The notes under the pieces are model-generated. The model saw only the letters and a program-made list of their open reading frames with translations. It was not told the origin of the DNA and did no database searches. Shown piece after piece: positions 4,330-31,776 of a stretch of DNA of 64,000 bases (its first letter is position 1; the number at the start of each line of letters is the position of its first letter). Location of the stretch: IMG/VR virus record IMGVR_UViG_3300035183_000733, positions 1 to 64,000 of that record. One strand, written 5' to 3'. The position numbers and the translations under genes were made by a program.

Positions 4330-4759
4330 ATGAGACACATCAAACTATACGAGGACTTCAAGGAGCAGAAGACGTACTACACGACCTCGTCGCCCATGAG
4401 CATATCCGAGTTCGTGGAGACCGAGGTGGAGGATCGCGGCAACTACGAGCAGGACCAGGTCGACGCCTGGATCGAGCAGTACGGGATAACCGACGACTCC
4501 GAGCTGCTGTGGATCACGACTACGCCGTGGATGGCCGCGAGGTACCAGATGAACGCCGAGGACTGGCACGACGCCGAGAGGATATACAACGCCAACAAGA
4601 GTGACTACCCGGTTCAGACGGTCGACGCGTCGGAGGGGACCATAGTGGAGGAATCCGACGACGGCGACGACGGATACATAATGATACTGAAGAAATCACC
4701 TGAGGAAGTACAACGACTTCGCCGACGACGACGGATACATAATGATACTGAAGAAATGA
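4330..4759 (+). CDS. hypothetical cargo protein (fused to next gene via tandem duplication)
   Basis: MRHIKLYEDFKE; natural end DDGYIMILKK seen in the duplicated unit. Confidence 0.55.
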
Positions 4760-4791
4760 ACCACCTGAGGAAGTACAACGACTTCGCCGAC
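4666..4791 (+). repeat. 61/65-bp tandem duplication spanning a stop/start overlap
   Basis: GACGACGGATACATAATGATACTGAAGAAAT(GAAC)CACCTGAGGAAGTACAACGACTTCGCCGAC twice. Confidence 0.9.
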
Positions 4792-19876: not shown

Positions 19877-19951
19877 GTCTCGATAGTATAGCGGCAATTA
19901 TACAACGGTCTCTAAAACCGATAGACATGGGTTCGAATCCCATTCGAGGCA
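19877..19951 (+). tRNA. amber suppressor tRNA(CUA)
   Basis: GTCTCGA/TCGAGGC acceptor; CGGT-CT-CTA-AA-ACCG. Confidence 0.9.
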
Positions 19952-20017
19952 CTTTTTTATAGTTTGGTGTCACAGGGAAAAAGAAGCAGAATTAAGAAAT
20001 AAATTAAAACAAAAGCC

Positions 20018-20830: not shown

Positions 20831-21053
20831 TAAGTTCGGTATAAACGAGGACGATGACCAGGAGCTTTTGGCGAAGCTGAGTCTTCCCGTCGAGGACAGG
20901 ACAGACGAACTGACCGGTATTGCCGAGGAAGTATCCAAGCGCGTCGATTACGAGTCCGACCTCGCGAGGTACATCTGCTACAAGATGCTCGCTGATTGCA
21001 ACGACCACGAGCTGGCGCTTAAATTCCTGCGCCTGTGCAACGAAGTAAAATGA
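20808..21053 (+). CDS. small protein with targeting-like leader
   Basis: MRKLQGFDKFGINE. Confidence 0.55.
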   Translation: MRKLQGFDKFGINEDDDQELLAKLSLPVEDRTDELTGIAEEVSKRVDYESDLARYICYKMLADCNDHELALKFLRLCNEVK

Positions 21054-21544
21054 GACATGTTAAGACATATAAGGTTTTCGAAGCCGAGTACGACGTATTT
21101 GCGAACAAGGCTGGCGAGGATTTTTGGGGCGATACTGGGGCCGGAATACTACCCATTTGCAGAGCAACTGGGAGAGTACTGGTTACCTACCGCTCTAAAT
21201 ACGTTAACGAACCTCACTCGTGGGGCGTCGTCGGCGGTAAGCTCGACGACGGCGAGACGGATGTTAAGGATGCTGCGAAGCGGGAGCTCCAGGAGGAACT
21301 GGGGTACGAAGGAGAATTCGAGCTCGTGCCGGCGTATGTATTCAAGAGTCAGGGCGGCGGGTTCGAGTACCACAACTTCATCGGGGTGGTGGAAGAGGAG
21401 TTCGAACCGACGTTAGACTGGGAAACGGAGAAGGCGAAGTGGGTGACGCTCGACGAGCTGATGAAACTTAGGCCGAAGCACTTCGGACTTGAGACGCTGA
21501 TCAAGAACAGCGGTGATATAATTAGGAAGTATGCAATTAAATAG
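21050..21544 (+). CDS. NUDIX hydrolase with targeting-like leader
   Basis: GGKLDDGETDVKDAAKRELQEELG Nudix box; MRHVKTYKVFE. Confidence 0.9.
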   Translation: MRHVKTYKVFEAEYDVFANKAGEDFWGDTGAGILPICRATGRVLVTYRSKYVNEPHSWGVVGGKLDDGETDVKDAAKRELQEELGYEGEFELVPAYVFKSQGGGFEYHNFIGVVEEEFEPTLDWETEKAKWVTLDELMKLRPKHFGLETLIKNSGDIIRKYAIK

Positions 21545-23489: not shown

Positions 23490-23900
23490 ATGCTTTTACA
23501 AATTCTACCTTTGGCCGGACAAATCAGAGACACAGTCGCTACTGCTGCGTCGCAGGGTAGGGGTCTTGAGATAGAACACCTCAACATAGACATACCTGAG
23601 CTGCAGCCCCTTCACTGGATCCTGGCGTACACGGGCCTCGCTGTGCACTTACTGCTGAAGATGGCGGAAACGCCCGGCGGATTGCTCGATGGGTTCACGA
23701 AGAAGGACGTGCTGATAACTCTTGCGTCCATACTCGCCATACCGGCAATACTCATCGTCTGCACGGACACCAGCCTGCGCGAGCTGTTGCCCATCAACTA
23801 TGTTACGGCATTCCTTGCCGGATACCAGACGCAGTCGTTATTGAGGACGTTCGGTGCGATCGGCGGAAAGTACATGGACAAGGCGTCCAAACAGCCGTAA
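23490..23900 (+). CDS. small multi-pass membrane protein (holin-like topology)
   Basis: 3 hydrophobic helices; GATATATA at 23461; terminator after. Confidence 0.65.
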   Translation: MLLQILPLAGQIRDTVATAASQGRGLEIEHLNIDIPELQPLHWILAYTGLAVHLLLKMAETPGGLLDGFTKKDVLITLASILAIPAILIVCTDTSLRELLPINYVTAFLAGYQTQSLLRTFGAIGGKYMDKASKQP

Positions 23901-24105
23901 GCAACGGAAATAAATTGGGAAGCCCGCATCGCTGCGGGCTTTTTATTTGTATAATCGTAGTGTTACCACGTCGCGCTGATAGAAAGCGGCCTCGGAAATA
24001 AAACGAGAAAATTCTGCCATAGAGAAAAAATATTTCTAATTTTGTGAAACATTTTATACTCGGGCGAATATATAGGGTAAGTGAATGTTTGTTCATTGAT
24101 TTATT

Positions 24106-24241
24106 GGGGAAGTAGCCAAACGGTAAAGGCACAAGTCTGTTAAAACTTGCAACACGTACAAAACCATAACGTTACTCTACTTTCTATTGAAAGAACTAAA
24201 TGTTATTTCAGTATCTGGAGGTTCGAATCCTTCCTTCCCCA
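24106..24241 (+). ncRNA. Tyr-like tRNA scaffold with TTCAGTA module in the variable arm
   Basis: GGGGAAG/CTTCCCC acceptor, T arm, 8-nt anticodon loop CTGTTAAA, ~60-nt insert. Confidence 0.75.
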
Positions 24242-24368
24242 CTTTGTTAGTTCATTGATATTTTGAAATTTGATTGGTCGTAAGACGGACAGACAAACAC
24301 ACGCCGCTACGAAAGTAGAATGAATCCTCGGAAGCGTACCGGGCTGTCCCAAGACAGATCAGATAAAT

Positions 24369-24507
24369 GGGGGAGTAGCTAAGTAAGTTACACACCTAAC
24401 GCTACTCTACTCTGGCAACAGAGAACTATGGCGATAGTTCAGTACAAGGTAAAGCAATTGTTTTGGATAACAATCAACCGCTGGTTCAACTCCAGCCTCC
24501 CCCACCA
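24369..24507 (+). ncRNA. tRNA scaffold (Gln-like) with TTCAGTA module in the D loop, encoded CCA
   Basis: GGGGGAG/CTCCCCC-ACCA; insert between AGCTAAGT and GGTAAAGC; distorted anticodon loop. Confidence 0.75.
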
Positions 24508-24530
24508 CTTTAAAGTTCTTTTACAAAATA

Positions 24531-24725
24531 TTGGAAGTAACTCTTCCACAAGCAAAGAGAGAAACTTGGCGAGTTTTCAGTAAAATTAGCTCAACTGGAA
24601 GAGCGTTTGCCTACTAAGCAGAATGTTGCGGGTTCGACTTCCGTATTTTATACCTAACAATTCGCTTCCATATCTCTCCCACACTGCCGATTAAACGGCA
24701 CAGGAGACTAAGTGCACCTTCAGTA
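24531..24725 (+). ncRNA. Arg-like tRNA scaffold (anticodon ACT, 24580-24652) flanked by two TTCAGTA modules
   Basis: cloverleaf GTAAAAT/ATTTTAT; TTTGC-CT-ACT-AA-GCAGA; modules end at 24582 and 24725. Confidence 0.7.
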
Positions 24726-24798
24726 ACAATCTTCGGATGATACCACGGGACACTAAAAACTCCGAACCATTACCCTGGTCGAGCAATCGGTCGGGGTT

Positions 24799-25248
24799 TT
24801 GTTTTTAATGAATAAACCGATGACGATAGAACAAAGAATAACACCAGAAGACATCACCGCGGACTACGTGCTCGCGGGCTGCGGAGCCTTGTGCTTCCTG
24901 TTTGGGTCTAACAAGTCCGGCATACACGGAGGTGGCGCAGCCAACTTCGCGCACAAGGAACTTGGGGCTGAGTGGAGCGTGGCGTTCGGTCCTACCGGTT
25001 ACTGCTTCGCGTTGCCGACTAAGGACTTCAACGTCGTCGACACGCTGCCCGTATCGGAAATAAAGACGTACGTCGACGGGTTCATCGAGCATGCCAGGCT
25101 GACGCCAGGTGTCCGATACCTCGTCACGGAGATAGGCTGCGGGCTCGCCGGCTATGAGCCTAAAGACATTGCGCCGTTGTTCGAAGCCGCGGTGTCAGTG
25201 GACAACATAAGTTTACCACAGAGGTTCTGGGAAATTCTCGGGGGATAG
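24799..25248 (+). CDS. macro-domain-like phage protein (A1S_2505-like)
   Basis: FLFGSNKSGIHGGGAA...FALPTK...VTEIGCGLAG. Confidence 0.7.
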   Translation: MFLMNKPMTIEQRITPEDITADYVLAGCGALCFLFGSNKSGIHGGGAANFAHKELGAEWSVAFGPTGYCFALPTKDFNVVDTLPVSEIKTYVDGFIEHARLTPGVRYLVTEIGCGLAGYEPKDIAPLFEAAVSVDNISLPQRFWEILGG

Positions 25249-25352: not shown

Positions 25353-26984
25353 ATGAAAGACCTAATAGTATCGAACAAGCAGCTACCTACCATAAAGGAA
25401 GGTATCGTGAAAGGACTCGAAGTTGCAAGCGGCGCGAGATCGTCTGCCACTTACTATCACAAGAAGGGAGAGATGCAAGTCGCAGTTCGCAACTCAGTTA
25501 CGAACTTGTACCAGATAAGCAAGGAGCTCCCATTGTTGCTCGCCGTTCAACACGGGGCAACCGGGTTCTTCATTCAGGAGGCCATCATGAACGAGCTGAA
25601 GCAGACCGAAAAAGGAGGCGCGTGTAATATCGTCAACCCTTCGGACTGGTACGACGAGGGCTTTGGCCAGCACCTGTTGCTTCACGCGCTGTACAACCTC
25701 GATACTGAGGCGGGCATCACATACGTGCTCCGCATGTTCACGCAGTACCGCGATAACAAGATAAACAACGCTCGTGCGAGGAAACTTGCTCTACGTTTCA
25801 TCTGGGGACACCCGAACCTCGAGTTCATCTCCGTGAAATACCGCGGAAAGCTAAGGGAGATCTTGTCGCACGTTTACGGCAAGAAGGTCGCCTATGGAAT
25901 TCTCAAGGCGAGCAAGCGCTACGTCGAGGCCGGTATATTCGACAACGACAAGTCTCGTAAACTGTTGCAGAAGAATATGGCGAGGTTCACGGACAACCTC
26001 GAGCGCTCGGCAAGGATATACATGTTCATATTCGGAAGCGCGAGGAAGGATCACTTCGACGCGTCTTTCAAAATCATAACTCAGTTCTTCGGCGCGCGCC
26101 AAGACATCTTCGGCGCAACTTCGGTTCCCGAGGAGATTCTCGTCGGCATCATCGGCGACAAGTCTCACCCTCAGTACCGCGAGTTCTGGGGTTCCAAGGA
26201 GAAGCGTCAGGACACGCTCAAGCGTATCCGCGAGCGCAACGTTGTCACCACGGCCAACCAGCAGGTTCGTCAGACCAAGAAGAACCAGGAGCTCGGCGTG
26301 ACTAAAGAGGTCGACCTGAAGAAGGTCACGGATTTCCTCGCGTTGTACAAGACCGGATACGAGACGGGATTCGTTCCCGCGCTCAACGAGGCCATTGAGG
26401 ACCTTGCAGGCAAGCGCAGATTGGTCGGATTCGCGTACCAGAACATCGGTATTGTCCTCGACAGGAGCGCGTCCATGACAGGACACAAGCAGGAGTCCAA
26501 GAACACACCACGCGCCATCGCCGAATTCACGGCGCTCGTTCTGCGCAAGTCGGTTAACACTGCCGACGTTGCCATGACCGCTGCCGGTGACAACTCGGAC
26601 ATCGCGTCCGCGTTCCTTGAGTTGGTGGATTCGGATAAGAACTACGAGGCGATATTCATCATCTCGGACGGATACGAGAACAGCTATGACGGATTGCTCA
26701 ACGAGGTGATCAAGGCCTGGAGGGACATGACCGAATCGGCAACGCCGATCTACCACATCTCCCCTGTTGTCGGGGCGGAACTCAATGCCAAAGTTCGCTC
26801 TATGGGCAACCAAATCTCCACCATCGCGGTCAACAGGCCGGAGGCGCTCAACGCTCAGATAAGCGCGAAGCTACTCGAGCAGGACACTAAGCGCTGGCTG
26901 GAGAACCAGTTCCGCATGCTGTCCGAGCAGGTGTCTAAGAGGGCATCTAAATTAAACGCAAACAAAGAAACAGAAACAAGATAA
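25353..26984 (+). CDS. helical N-terminus + C-terminal VWA protein (TROVE/Ro60-like architecture)
   Basis: VLDRSASM MIDAS, IISDGYEN; large alpha-helical N-terminal region. Confidence 0.6.
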   Translation: MKDLIVSNKQLPTIKEGIVKGLEVASGARSSATYYHKKGEMQVAVRNSVTNLYQISKELPLLLAVQHGATGFFIQEAIMNELKQTEKGGACNIVNPSDWYDEGFGQHLLLHALYNLDTEAGITYVLRMFTQYRDNKINNARARKLALRFIWGHPNLEFISVKYRGKLREILSHVYGKKVAYGILKASKRYVEAGIFDNDKSRKLLQKNMARFTDNLERSARIYMFIFGSARKDHFDASFKIITQFFGARQDIFGATSVPEEILVGIIGDKSHPQYREFWGSKEKRQDTLKRIRERNVVTTANQQVRQTKKNQELGVTKEVDLKKVTDFLALYKTGYETGFVPALNEAIEDLAGKRRLVGFAYQNIGIVLDRSASMTGHKQESKNTPRAIAEFTALVLRKSVNTADVAMTAAGDNSDIASAFLELVDSDKNYEAIFIISDGYENSYDGLLNEVIKAWRDMTESATPIYHISPVVGAELNAKVRSMGNQISTIAVNRPEALNAQISAKLLEQDTKRWLENQFRMLSEQVSKRASKLNANKETETR

Positions 26985-26987
26985 GTC

Positions 26988-28076
26988 ATGGTAAATTTCA
27001 AAGACCTACTAAAGGGATGCAGGCTGCACAAAGATGCGGACGGCAACATAATCGTTCAGTCAATCCTGAACATGCAGCTGGTTTGTCTGACCACCGACAG
27101 TGAGTTCAGCCACAACAAGTTCGCTAACCCTATGGACGTGCTTGGTTCTAACCAAAGATACGGGCACCTCAACCTTACCAACCCCGAGAACAAGGACATG
27201 ATAGTCCCTGCTCAGATAGCCGTTCTCACCAAGCAGAGCGCGCAGAACCACGGGATGGTGAAGGCCGCGTACATCCCGTCGAAGTCGAGATCCGACTTCT
27301 ACGACGCTGGGTGTGTGCAGGGATCGCAGCCCGGTTACATCCGCGCTAACAAGAACGACCAGGAGATCCGTTTCCTTCCGTTTGGTGTGCGCGAGTACAT
27401 CTGGAACAAGGTGAACAAGACCGGTAGCCACGATAACATCTACGCAGCCATCGACAAGGTTGGTCGCGATACTGGAGCTAACTCCGGAACGTATATCGAC
27501 CAGTACTTCAAGAAGTTCGATAAGGAGATAAACGAGTTCATCGCGCACTTCGAGCGCCCGAAGAACACCATCGGCACCATCGTGCTCATCGACGGTGAGA
27601 TAATCGCCATCGACAAGTTCCCGAGCTTCGAGTACTGCGAGCAGGTGTGGGACGCGCTGATACGCGACTGCTACGGTGCCATTGCCATTACGCAGGAAAG
27701 GCAGGGCAAGAAGGCCCAGTCACTGTTCACCGAGAACATGTCTAAGCAGAAGCGCAAGGCAAACGAATCGCCGGCAGCGTACCTGAAGAGGATCATGACT
27801 TCCACCAAGAAGTCTATCGAGGACAACGTGCGCGCTAAGCTTGAGGAAATTCTCGAGCTCAGCTTCAGCGAGAGGCAGGACACCGACCTCAATGGCCAGA
27901 ACGGGTACACATCTAAGATCCTCACCGCGGAGGGCTACATAGGACAGAAGATTTCCGAGTCCAACTACCACCACCTGGTGTCTGTTGTGCGCAAGGAGTC
28001 GTTCGACCCGGAGCGTTTCCGCAAGGCAAACGAGATGCGCTCGAAAGCGAGCAAGCAGAGGGGATTCGAGATTTAA
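26988..28076 (+). CDS. ARPP-1/DUF6569-like protein
   Basis: L.N...AQNH...GCVQG; IGTIVLIDGEIIAIDKF...WDALIRDCY. Confidence 0.6.
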   Translation: MVNFKDLLKGCRLHKDADGNIIVQSILNMQLVCLTTDSEFSHNKFANPMDVLGSNQRYGHLNLTNPENKDMIVPAQIAVLTKQSAQNHGMVKAAYIPSKSRSDFYDAGCVQGSQPGYIRANKNDQEIRFLPFGVREYIWNKVNKTGSHDNIYAAIDKVGRDTGANSGTYIDQYFKKFDKEINEFIAHFERPKNTIGTIVLIDGEIIAIDKFPSFEYCEQVWDALIRDCYGAIAITQERQGKKAQSLFTENMSKQKRKANESPAAYLKRIMTSTKKSIEDNVRAKLEEILELSFSERQDTDLNGQNGYTSKILTAEGYIGQKISESNYHHLVSVVRKESFDPERFRKANEMRSKASKQRGFEI

Positions 28077-31101: not shown

Positions 31102-31190
31102 GGGTGGATTACCGTAGAGGCCGAACGGTCCAGACTGTTAATCTGGTGTGACGACGAGTCCCATCGCAGGTTCGAATCCTGCTCCGCCCG
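31102..31190 (+). tRNA. tRNA-Asn(GTT), long variable arm
   Basis: CCAGA-CT-GTT-AA-TCTGG, G73. Confidence 0.9.
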
Positions 31191-31226
31191 CAAAAATAGG
31201 TCCGACACGGGTAGATAGTAAATTAT

Positions 31227-31390: not shown

Positions 31391-31480
31391 GGGTGTACGG
31401 TCGCGACGGTGGAGCGACCCCAGTCTGTAAAACTGGGACATTTAAAGAAACGCCGGGGGTTCGAAATCCCTCTACACCCA
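31391..31480 (+). tRNA. tRNA-Tyr(GTA)
   Basis: CCAGT-CT-GTA-AA-ACTGG; 8-nt T loop. Confidence 0.85.
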
Positions 31481-31485
31481 CACAT

Positions 31486-31574: not shown

Positions 31575-31658
31575 TGTCCGATCGCCTAATGGCATGGCGC
31601 CGGGTTTTGGCCCCGGTGGGAAGTAATTCCTGTGTAGGTTCGACCCCTGCTCGGACAA
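31575..31658 (+). tRNA. tRNA-Gln(TTG), long variable arm
   Basis: CCGGG-TT-TTG-GC-CCCGG; GGGAA-GTAA-TTCCT arm. Confidence 0.9.
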
Positions 31659-31776
31659 CAAGACATCGACAGAGGTACTCGTCCGCAGACGTGTGGAAAA
31701 GTGTGTGCTTGCGACCATTAAAGTCTCTGTGTATCCCAATAGGTAGGAAGTAATTACTCTGAATGATTGGGAATAC

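Follow-up and report, generated by a model that had tools for sequence, protein, structure and literature searches.

An array of tRNA-like small RNAs upstream of a remote Ro60-like gene in a jumbo phage looks like a phage-specific version of the Ro60/Y-RNA particle

The first 64 kb of the 373,759-bp viral contig IMGVR_UViG_3300035183_000733, a jumbo phage, were analysed (positions 1 to 64,000, hereafter the window). They contain an AT-rich gap that is flanked by two intrinsic terminators and in which the heptamer TTCAGTA recurs on the + strand at 24207, 24438, 24576 and 24719, the four places where a first-pass annotation of this DNA had reported it. Because only ~0.04 copies are expected on one strand of the 620-nt stretch, these four lie far above chance; over both strands of the window (128 kb) the heptamer was observed 13 times against 7.3 expected. 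Judged from its sequence, 24106–24797 is a single terminator-bounded transcription unit coding for four small non-coding RNAs, and it shares its strand with the three genes that follow. From the end of the array it is ~550 nt to position 25353, the start of a gene whose product is predicted to be a remote relative of Ro60. The features of the locus are listed below, with P_in and P_out denoting the inner and outer helix of a module that the RNAs have in common, MFE the minimum free energy fold and PWM the position weight matrix of the module.

23916–23945, + strand: intrinsic terminator of the upstream gene, a stem of 13 bp and then a T run; bounds the RNA unit on its 5′ side
24106–24241, + strand: RNA 1, tRNA-like, with acceptor stem, D arm and T arm (Rfam tRNA, 47.8 bits)
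24166–24213, + strand: module of RNA 1 (PWM, 24.6 bits); P_out 24166–24173/24199–24206, 5′ loop 24174–24179, P_in 24180–24184/24189–24193, AACT 24194–24197, TTCAGTA 24207–24213
24369–24507, + strand: RNA 2 (type I), tRNA-like with the module in its D loop; partial Rfam tRNA match
24396–24444, + strand: module of RNA 2, both helices present in the MFE fold; P_out 24396–24403/24430–24437, P_in 24410–24414/24419–24423, AACT 24424–24427, TTCAGTA 24438–24444
24557–24678, + strand: RNA 3 (type II), a full tRNA within a leader/trailer helix, the long-range helix being present in the MFE fold; P_in 24557–24562/24673–24678, AACT 24563–24566, P_out 24568–24575/24659–24666, TTCAGTA 24576–24582
24703–24763, + strand: RNA 4 (type V-like mini RNA), from the MFE fold; P_in 24703–24706/24760–24763, P_out region 24710–24718/24747–24754, TTCAGTA 24719–24725
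24772–24797, + strand: intrinsic terminator of the RNA array; 3′ boundary of the array
24811–25245, + strand: A1S_2505-family phage protein, 145 aa (NCBIfam NF049995, E = 4e-36; phrog_2072)
25353–26984, + strand: remote Ro60-like protein, 543 aa, predicted to form a TROVE-like ring of helices and, after it, a vWA domain bearing a MIDAS motif (metal-ion-dependent adhesion site)
26988–28076, + strand: ARPP-1 domain protein, 362 aa (Pfam PF20208, E = 1.3e-14)

All four RNAs share the same module, which consists of P_in (4–6 bp), an asymmetric internal loop with an invariant AACU on its 3′ side, a G·U-rich P_out (8–9 bp) and a single-stranded U(U/A)CAGUA. The invariant stretch is therefore one strand of the helix, running from P_in through AACU and P_out into the U(U/A)CAGUA that leads to the body of the RNA, while the opposite strand carries the 5′ side of P_out, a loop of 4–7 nt and the 5′ side of P_in.

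In RNA 1 the module occupies an insert of ~65 nt that follows the anticodon arm, in the variable region, as located by Rfam and ARAGORN. The cloverleaf is present in the MFE fold, and its D and anticodon arms agree with the consensus of the orthologous RNAs (type IV, described below). P_out and P_in are supported by direct base complementarity and by the partner search (8/8 and 5/5 pairs), but within the insert the MFE fold favours another hairpin, one specific to the window. The outer and inner stems that had been proposed for the first two copies are all present, but only those of copy 2 are returned by energy minimisation. The match of RNA 2 to the Rfam tRNA model covers no more than the D arm through the T arm (24435–24496; 21.7 bits, below the threshold of 29); RNA 2 ends in an encoded CCA (24505–24507) and is a member of the alignment of 43 type I orthologues (A2). 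The anticodon loops of these two RNAs each have 8 nt (24137–24144 and 24462–24469), as had been noted. RNA 3 holds a tRNA body with the previously reported anticodon ACT (24580–24652; Rfam tRNA, 56.6 bits), around which GAGAGA at 24557–24562 pairs with TCTCTC at 24673–24678 and GGCGAGTT at 24568–24575 pairs with AATTCGCT at 24659–24666. This fold, together with the Rfam and ARAGORN placements, bears out the claim that the module sits in the variable region, in the D loop and on both sides of the third tRNA. It also means that CTCTCC at 24673–24679, at first assigned to copy 4, is really the partner strand of copy 3, as it is in 30 orthologues; copy 4 is a separate mini RNA whose own partner strand lies downstream (24747–24763). 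The body of RNA 4 is only a UUCG hairpin (24729–24738), and its module is the most degenerate of the four, with ACT in place of AACT and 6/9 pairs in P_out. Its body sequence, AATCTTCGGA, is common to the gene-proximal RNAs of two related loci (L003 and L005). A search of 23900–24900 with Rfam 15 at E ≤ 10 returned tRNA matches only, and neither YrlA nor Y_RNA.

The module is conserved together with the gene downstream of it. We retrieved 80 viral loci encoding a homologue of the 25353 protein (45–52% identity), and we counted modules in 63 non-redundant related phage loci using a 27-nt PWM at a threshold of ≥18 bits. This gave 251 matches, all on the gene strand and 0–3.5 kb upstream of the homologue, and none on the opposite strand or downstream of it; the linkage between module and gene was found in 60 of the 63 loci. 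The modal locus has 4–5 modules spaced 90–500 nt apart. In the window the PWM finds no module elsewhere, and the other 20 tRNA genes lack it. The core conserved across relatives is RRARAACU-N4-GUKUU-U(U/A)CAGUA-AA. The motif is therefore a recurring one, as had been proposed, but TTCAGTA itself is not invariant: TTACAGTA is equally common among the relatives, and one or the other is repeated upstream of the homologue in nearly all of the fetched loci. An exact 16-base pattern searched against all of IMG/VR was found in 84 stretches, among which the multi-copy arrays either have the gene downstream or lie on contigs that end before the gene could appear. A blastn search of the RNA region against 50,697 phage records gave no match.

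About 20 solitary high-scoring matches in IMG/VR were set aside as chance coding sequence, as all four that were inspected fall within an open reading frame for a DnaB-like helicase. The part of this gene that encodes ...GTESVFSN... mimics the module core (L098 at ~1070–1100, L126, L159, L093 and ~16 further IMG/VR stretches) and is a trap for searches that rely on the motif alone.

Covariation argues that the module is maintained as an RNA structure. In 68 modules the partner strand is found upstream (closed form, P_in capped by a hairpin loop), and in 148 it is found downstream (open form, P_in made from the RNA ends). In the type I alignment (D-loop insert, n = 43) 94.9% of the cells are paired, and compensatory changes occur at 6/8 pairs of P_out and 4/5 of P_in; in type IV (permuted, n = 42) 98.6% are paired and all six helices have compensatory changes, with 7/7 in the acceptor; and in type II (leader/trailer, n = 30, alignment A4) 93.6% are paired, with compensatory changes at 10/13 pairs. 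None of 500 shuffles reached the observed pairing in any of these three types, and sliding the partner strand by 1–3 columns reduced pairing to ~50%. The compensatory pairs and the shuffles together indicate selection at the RNA level. Swapping cognate for non-cognate strands was only weakly discriminating (12.3 vs 11.2 of 13 pairs), as AT-rich flanks pair easily; because the flanks blunt this test, the column-wise counts are the real evidence for the helices. A local hairpin inside the invariant strand (ACUGA/UCAGU or GAGAAC/GUUUUC) was considered and rejected, as its variable positions show no covariation, and a separate 5′ strand is favoured.

Type I RNAs have a further complementarity, between nucleotides 4–10 (the end of the 5′ acceptor strand and nucleotides 8–10) and a segment overlapping the 5′ strand of the module. 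In the window this corresponds to 24373–24379 with 24401–24407; it covaries between subfamilies in alignment A2, and its mean longest Watson–Crick run is 6.0, compared with 4.1 in shuffles. Since this pairing and the module helix are mutually exclusive, it may represent a conformational switch or an alternative fold.

Across the related loci the RNAs fall into five orthologous types, in which the module is joined at the D loop, at the variable loop or at the acceptor ends. Type I, to which RNA 2 belongs, carries it in the D loop of a tRNA-like RNA, and type II, represented by RNA 3, encloses a full tRNA in a leader/trailer helix formed by the module, the 5′ module strand in the window being 24659–24678. 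Type III is a mini RNA that follows a tRNA-Met and has no member in the window; type V is the mini RNA closest to the gene, where we place RNA 4. These two of the five types have no tRNA body, their bodies being 31–50 nt long. Between RNA 1 and RNA 2 lies a 127-nt spacer (24242–24368) that can form a GGACAG...CTGTCC stem and has no module; its place is taken in other phages by the tRNA-Met and a mini RNA.

Type IV is a circularly permuted tRNA-like gene (42 sequences) in which the 3′ strand of the acceptor precedes the 5′ strand. Its order is module 3′ strand, T arm, 3′ acceptor, N-CCA linker, 5′ acceptor, D arm, anticodon arm and module 5′ strand. RNA 1 has the same GGGGAAG/CTTCCCC acceptor and represents this type in unpermuted form, with a loop capping its module and with an open acceptor. 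As read from the alignments, these orthologues differ by circular permutation with the predicted fold unchanged, and that RNA 1 has permuted orthologues of the same fold is strong evidence that the fold with its attached module is the object of selection. The loop closing the type IV acceptor (alignment A3, columns 57–60) starts with N-CCA in 26 of the 42 RNAs and with CCA in 6 more; this could be either a mimic of a CCA end or a real processing site.

Anticodon identity is not conserved: 24 calls in type II orthologues give 16 different anticodons, and the 42 type IV RNAs have 24 different loop sequences. RNA 1 and RNA 3 pass the Rfam RF00005 threshold of 29 and RNA 2 does not, and the 7-nt loop with a conserved anticodon that is expected of a decoding tRNA was not found, as RNAs 1 and 2 have 8-nt loops and the anticodons vary. 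The tRNA-like bodies are thus probably not decoders. This fits the description of them as non-decoding in the first-pass annotation, whereas the Tyr, Gln and Arg labels given there have no meaning across the family.

The protein encoded at 25353–26984 has hundreds of homologues, none with a Pfam domain. An AlphaFold2 model built with 32 homologues (pLDDT 81, pTM 0.76) has a helical region at residues 11–354 and an alpha/beta region at 364–525. In a Foldseek search against the PDB the top 12 matches are all Ro60, Rsr or TROVE structures (490–575 columns, probability 1.00, E = 3e-5 to 1e-3), including 1yvp, 2i91, 9nfa, 2nvo and those of the Thermus phage phiLo (9l5y and 9kop), while the next match has E > 0.05. 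The top matches in a viral structure library are likewise all Ro60/TROVE proteins; they include Gordonia phage VanLee's 'Ro-like RNA binding protein' (TM-score 0.46), the named top match. The DxSxS of the vWA MIDAS (D370, S372 and S374) is invariant among the homologues, and the predicted model has the architecture of the Ro60 family, a HEAT-like ring plus a vWA domain with MIDAS in ~540 aa. The model therefore suggests that the 25353 protein is a remote, highly divergent homologue of Ro60. Its superfamily comprises 435 clusters at 50% identity and was found on only five contigs of metagenome-assembled genomes (MAGs) among 185,579 species genomes; in this study the clade was found only on viral contigs or on metagenomic contigs of unassigned origin.

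Only the 25353 gene and the ARPP-1 gene downstream of it are conserved across the loci (75/79), and the two genes adjoin in distant relatives too. The 145-aa A1S_2505-family gene gave no tblastn match at the other loci and is found in this phage only. In one distant relative (P0260; L166, 1122–3776) the Ro60-like and ARPP-1 proteins are a natural fusion of 884 aa with a C-terminal ARPP-1 domain (565–823, E = 9e-30). Upstream of the gene for this fusion lie tRNA-like RNAs with variant motifs, and in a distant relative that is rich in GC (L167) two GGAACU...GUCAGUA mini RNAs precede the gene on its own strand. ARPP-1 has been described only from ARG-centred systems, as an enzyme predicted to act on ribose or ADP-ribose moieties; vWA 'chaperones' were noted in those systems as well (PMC9503650).

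The arrangement has a parallel in the Y RNAs, which adjoin Ro60 genes in >250 bacteria and phages, are modular and include at least one tRNA mimic per species (PMC4201824). In Thermus phage phiLo, Ro60 binds two Y-like RNAs encoded upstream, Yrl1 and Yrl2 (PMC12135203). The majority of YrlA RNAs look like tRNAs that are circularly permuted and have a closed acceptor stem, and the YrlA of M. smegmatis, with a 7-bp acceptor stem, is a substrate of RNase P and has CCA added (bioRxiv 10.1101/312249). The locus shares with YrlA (RF02553)/Ro60 the several small RNAs beside a Ro60-type gene on the same strand, and the modular construction from a conserved helix with an internal loop and a tRNA-like effector domain. 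The order of type IV, with T arm, closed acceptor and D arm inside a terminal helix, is that of YrlA, although RNA 1 is itself unpermuted, and the 7-bp acceptor of type IV with its encoded N-CCA fits the M. smegmatis RNA. The type IV RNA of one related locus (L009) aligns over its full length with the Rfam YrlA model, scoring 37 bits where the threshold is 69. There are also differences. The motif here is AACU...GUKUU-U(U/A)CAGUA, mainly on the strand leading to the body, instead of GNCGAA(N)G/CGAA, and CGAA or CAAA occurs only as a variable 5′-side loop in some RNA types. The anticodon arm is complete, and the module sits at the variable loop, the D loop or the acceptor ends and does not replace the anticodon stem. 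Each locus has four to six RNAs, sequence comparison does not detect the protein as TROVE, and the gene is coupled to ARPP-1 in place of RtcB/RtcA.

Y RNAs beside Ro60 genes thus have precedent (PMC4201824, PMC12135203), and this precedent supports a Ro60/Y-RNA reading of the locus; so do the Ro60-like predicted fold, the gene linkage in ~60 phages, the covariation and the permuted, YrlA-like topology, all of which strengthen the earlier suggestion of tRNA mimics akin to YrlA. We consider it reasonably probable that the four RNAs are Y-RNA-like partners of the Ro60 homologue encoded at 25353–26984, possibly also of the ARPP-1 protein at 26988–28076. Our confidence is no more than moderate because we infer both the binding of the module by the 25353 protein and the function of the particle. 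In such a model the module would be the docking site for the protein ring, contacted through AACU, P_out and CAGUA, and the variable body, a tRNA-like fold or a small hairpin, would be presented to enzymes or effectors that recognise tRNA, in the way that YrlA serves Rsr. The purpose of such a particle would likely be tRNA or RNA surveillance, repair or counter-defence during infection.

Several observations weigh against this reading. Predicted structure is the sole basis for the relationship of the 25353 protein to Ro60, and the TM-scores are modest (0.3–0.46). The TROVE domain (PF05731) was not found by Pfam in the protein, in 32 close or in 30 distant relatives, nor was Ro60 found from the same sequences with PHROGs, NCBIfam or phmmer and hmmsearch against the PDB; a MAG relative (L085, 23% identical) offers no bridge to TROVE either. 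The available flanks of three distant relatives (L168, L169 and L085) contain no recognisable module. No Rfam Y-RNA family reaches its threshold in the window or in 16 related loci, the latter giving tRNA matches, one GOLLD RNA and sub-threshold YrlA and transfer-messenger RNA (tmRNA) matches, and the module lacks GNCGAA(N)G/CGAA, the defining motif of known bacterial and phage Ro60 sites. Finally, ARPP-1 or a host factor could equally be the binding partner of the RNAs.

The distribution of the module also invites an explanation in terms of RNA maturation, in which the helix would be a processing or splicing signal, similar to the bulge–helix–bulge (BHB), marking disrupted or permuted tRNA genes whose transcripts are cleaved at the helix and ligated and, with RNase P or Z opening the acceptor loop, yield functional tRNAs. 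A helix found at the D loop, at the variable loop, as leader and trailer and at permuted ends is distributed as the BHB is in archaea and Cyanidioschyzon (PMC3978253). As in the permuted and disrupted genes of C. merolae and archaea, the 3′ half lies upstream of the 5′ half with a short linker between them (in the type IV orthologues, not in the window), the transcript ends form a helix, and the same helix is found at non-canonical sites in unpermuted relatives. The N-CCA or CCA of the acceptor-closing loop would suit this explanation, as would the orthologues' anticodon loops, which mostly have 7 nt with U33 and A37. However, the helix is not a BHB: in place of two 3-nt bulges 4 bp apart there is a single internal loop with 4–7 nt opposite the 4-nt AACU(N), and here the setting is a bacteriophage, with no sign of splicing. 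Removing the module would leave A/C-rich spacers of 10–20 nt in the D or variable loop, the mini RNAs have no tRNA body to mature, the anticodons vary freely among orthologues, and the module is restricted to one locus with the other tRNA genes of the window lacking it; the CCA, for its part, has a Y-RNA precedent in M. smegmatis YrlA (bioRxiv 10.1101/312249). We therefore regard maturation to functional tRNAs as unlikely. A variant in which the Ro60-like/ARPP-1 pair itself uses the helix as a processing and ligation signal, so that permuted or disrupted genes give rise to CCA-ended tRNA-like molecules that are assembled or opened, seems slightly less likely still; if true, the helix would do more than dock the ring, maturation of permuted or split tRNAs would be documented for the first time beyond archaea and algae, and the infection would be supplied with a pool of tRNAs whose anticodons evolve freely.

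The same freely varying anticodons, on tRNA-like bodies of canonical loop geometry, would be expected of free-standing decoys or sponges for host anticodon nucleases or modification enzymes, in which the Ro60-like protein is not involved and the shared helix serves stability or processing only. The heavy investment of this phage in tRNAs (23 in the window) is in keeping with this. A sequence-invariant module of 25 nt, mini RNAs without a tRNA body and the strict linkage to the Ro60-like/ARPP-1 pair are all left unexplained, though, and we think an independent decoy function improbable; as a downstream role it is compatible with Y-RNA-like partners of a Ro60 homologue and does not exclude them. 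A core that is repeated, strand-specific and sequence-invariant, in several copies per locus 90–500 nt apart, could also be a phage promoter or operator acting at the DNA level before each small RNA gene. The compensatory changes with partner strands ≤110 nt away on either side make sense in RNA only, the module lies within the tRNA-like fold in two RNA types, and the rest of the window lacks the element; the long-range changes in particular exclude a DNA-level promoter but for a very slight residual chance. Joining an acceptor/T-arm mimic to a non-tRNA module also recalls tmRNA and the 3′ tRNA-like structures of viruses, and it gives rise to weak Rfam matches to permuted tmRNA. These matches score 26 bits against a threshold of 47, and neither an mRNA-like reading frame nor a tag peptide is present.

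Some further observations concern the setting. In locus L009 a GOLLD RNA (RF02032, 205 bits; 4347–4776) lies directly upstream of the Y-like RNA array, and none was found beside the array in 11 other loci examined. A NUDIX hydrolase gene (21035–21541) lies 3 kb upstream of the RNA array and Ro60-like locus in the window. Two of the 23 tRNAs predicted by ARAGORN are amber suppressors with the anticodon CTA (19877–19952 and 42187–42258, labelled 'Pyl' by the program), which suggests TAG recoding in part of the phage's genes. Long variable arms are found in tRNA-Asn (31102–31191), tRNA-Gln (31575–31659), tRNA-Val (43088–43174) and tRNA-His (47316–47401), these being 85–90 nt long, and in tRNA-Tyr (31391–31481, 91 nt). 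The tRNAs for Asn, Gln, Val and His have a short variable arm as a rule. Every long-arm tRNA adjoins an isoacceptor of normal length.

Conservation of Ro60/Y-RNA particles extends from bacteria to humans, but their roles in bacteria and phages are poorly understood; known Y RNAs are detected with a single motif and a single covariance model. Together the array and the Ro60-like gene look like a previously unrecognised, phage-specific version of this particle, and a literature search found no paper describing such a family of Ro60-like proteins and RNA modules. It would mean that a large clade (435 clusters) with a different RNA signature has been missed as Ro60 by sequence tools, a clade with an obligate ARPP-1 partner, earlier tied only to ADP-ribose systems, and with four to six RNAs per genome. 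Three graft sites and a natural circular permutation provide a ready 'mutational series' for asking which parts of a Y RNA matter, and the family offers material for finding out what a giant phage gains by mounting tRNA mimics on a Ro60 ring, for which tRNA repair, RNA decay and evasion of defence are candidates.

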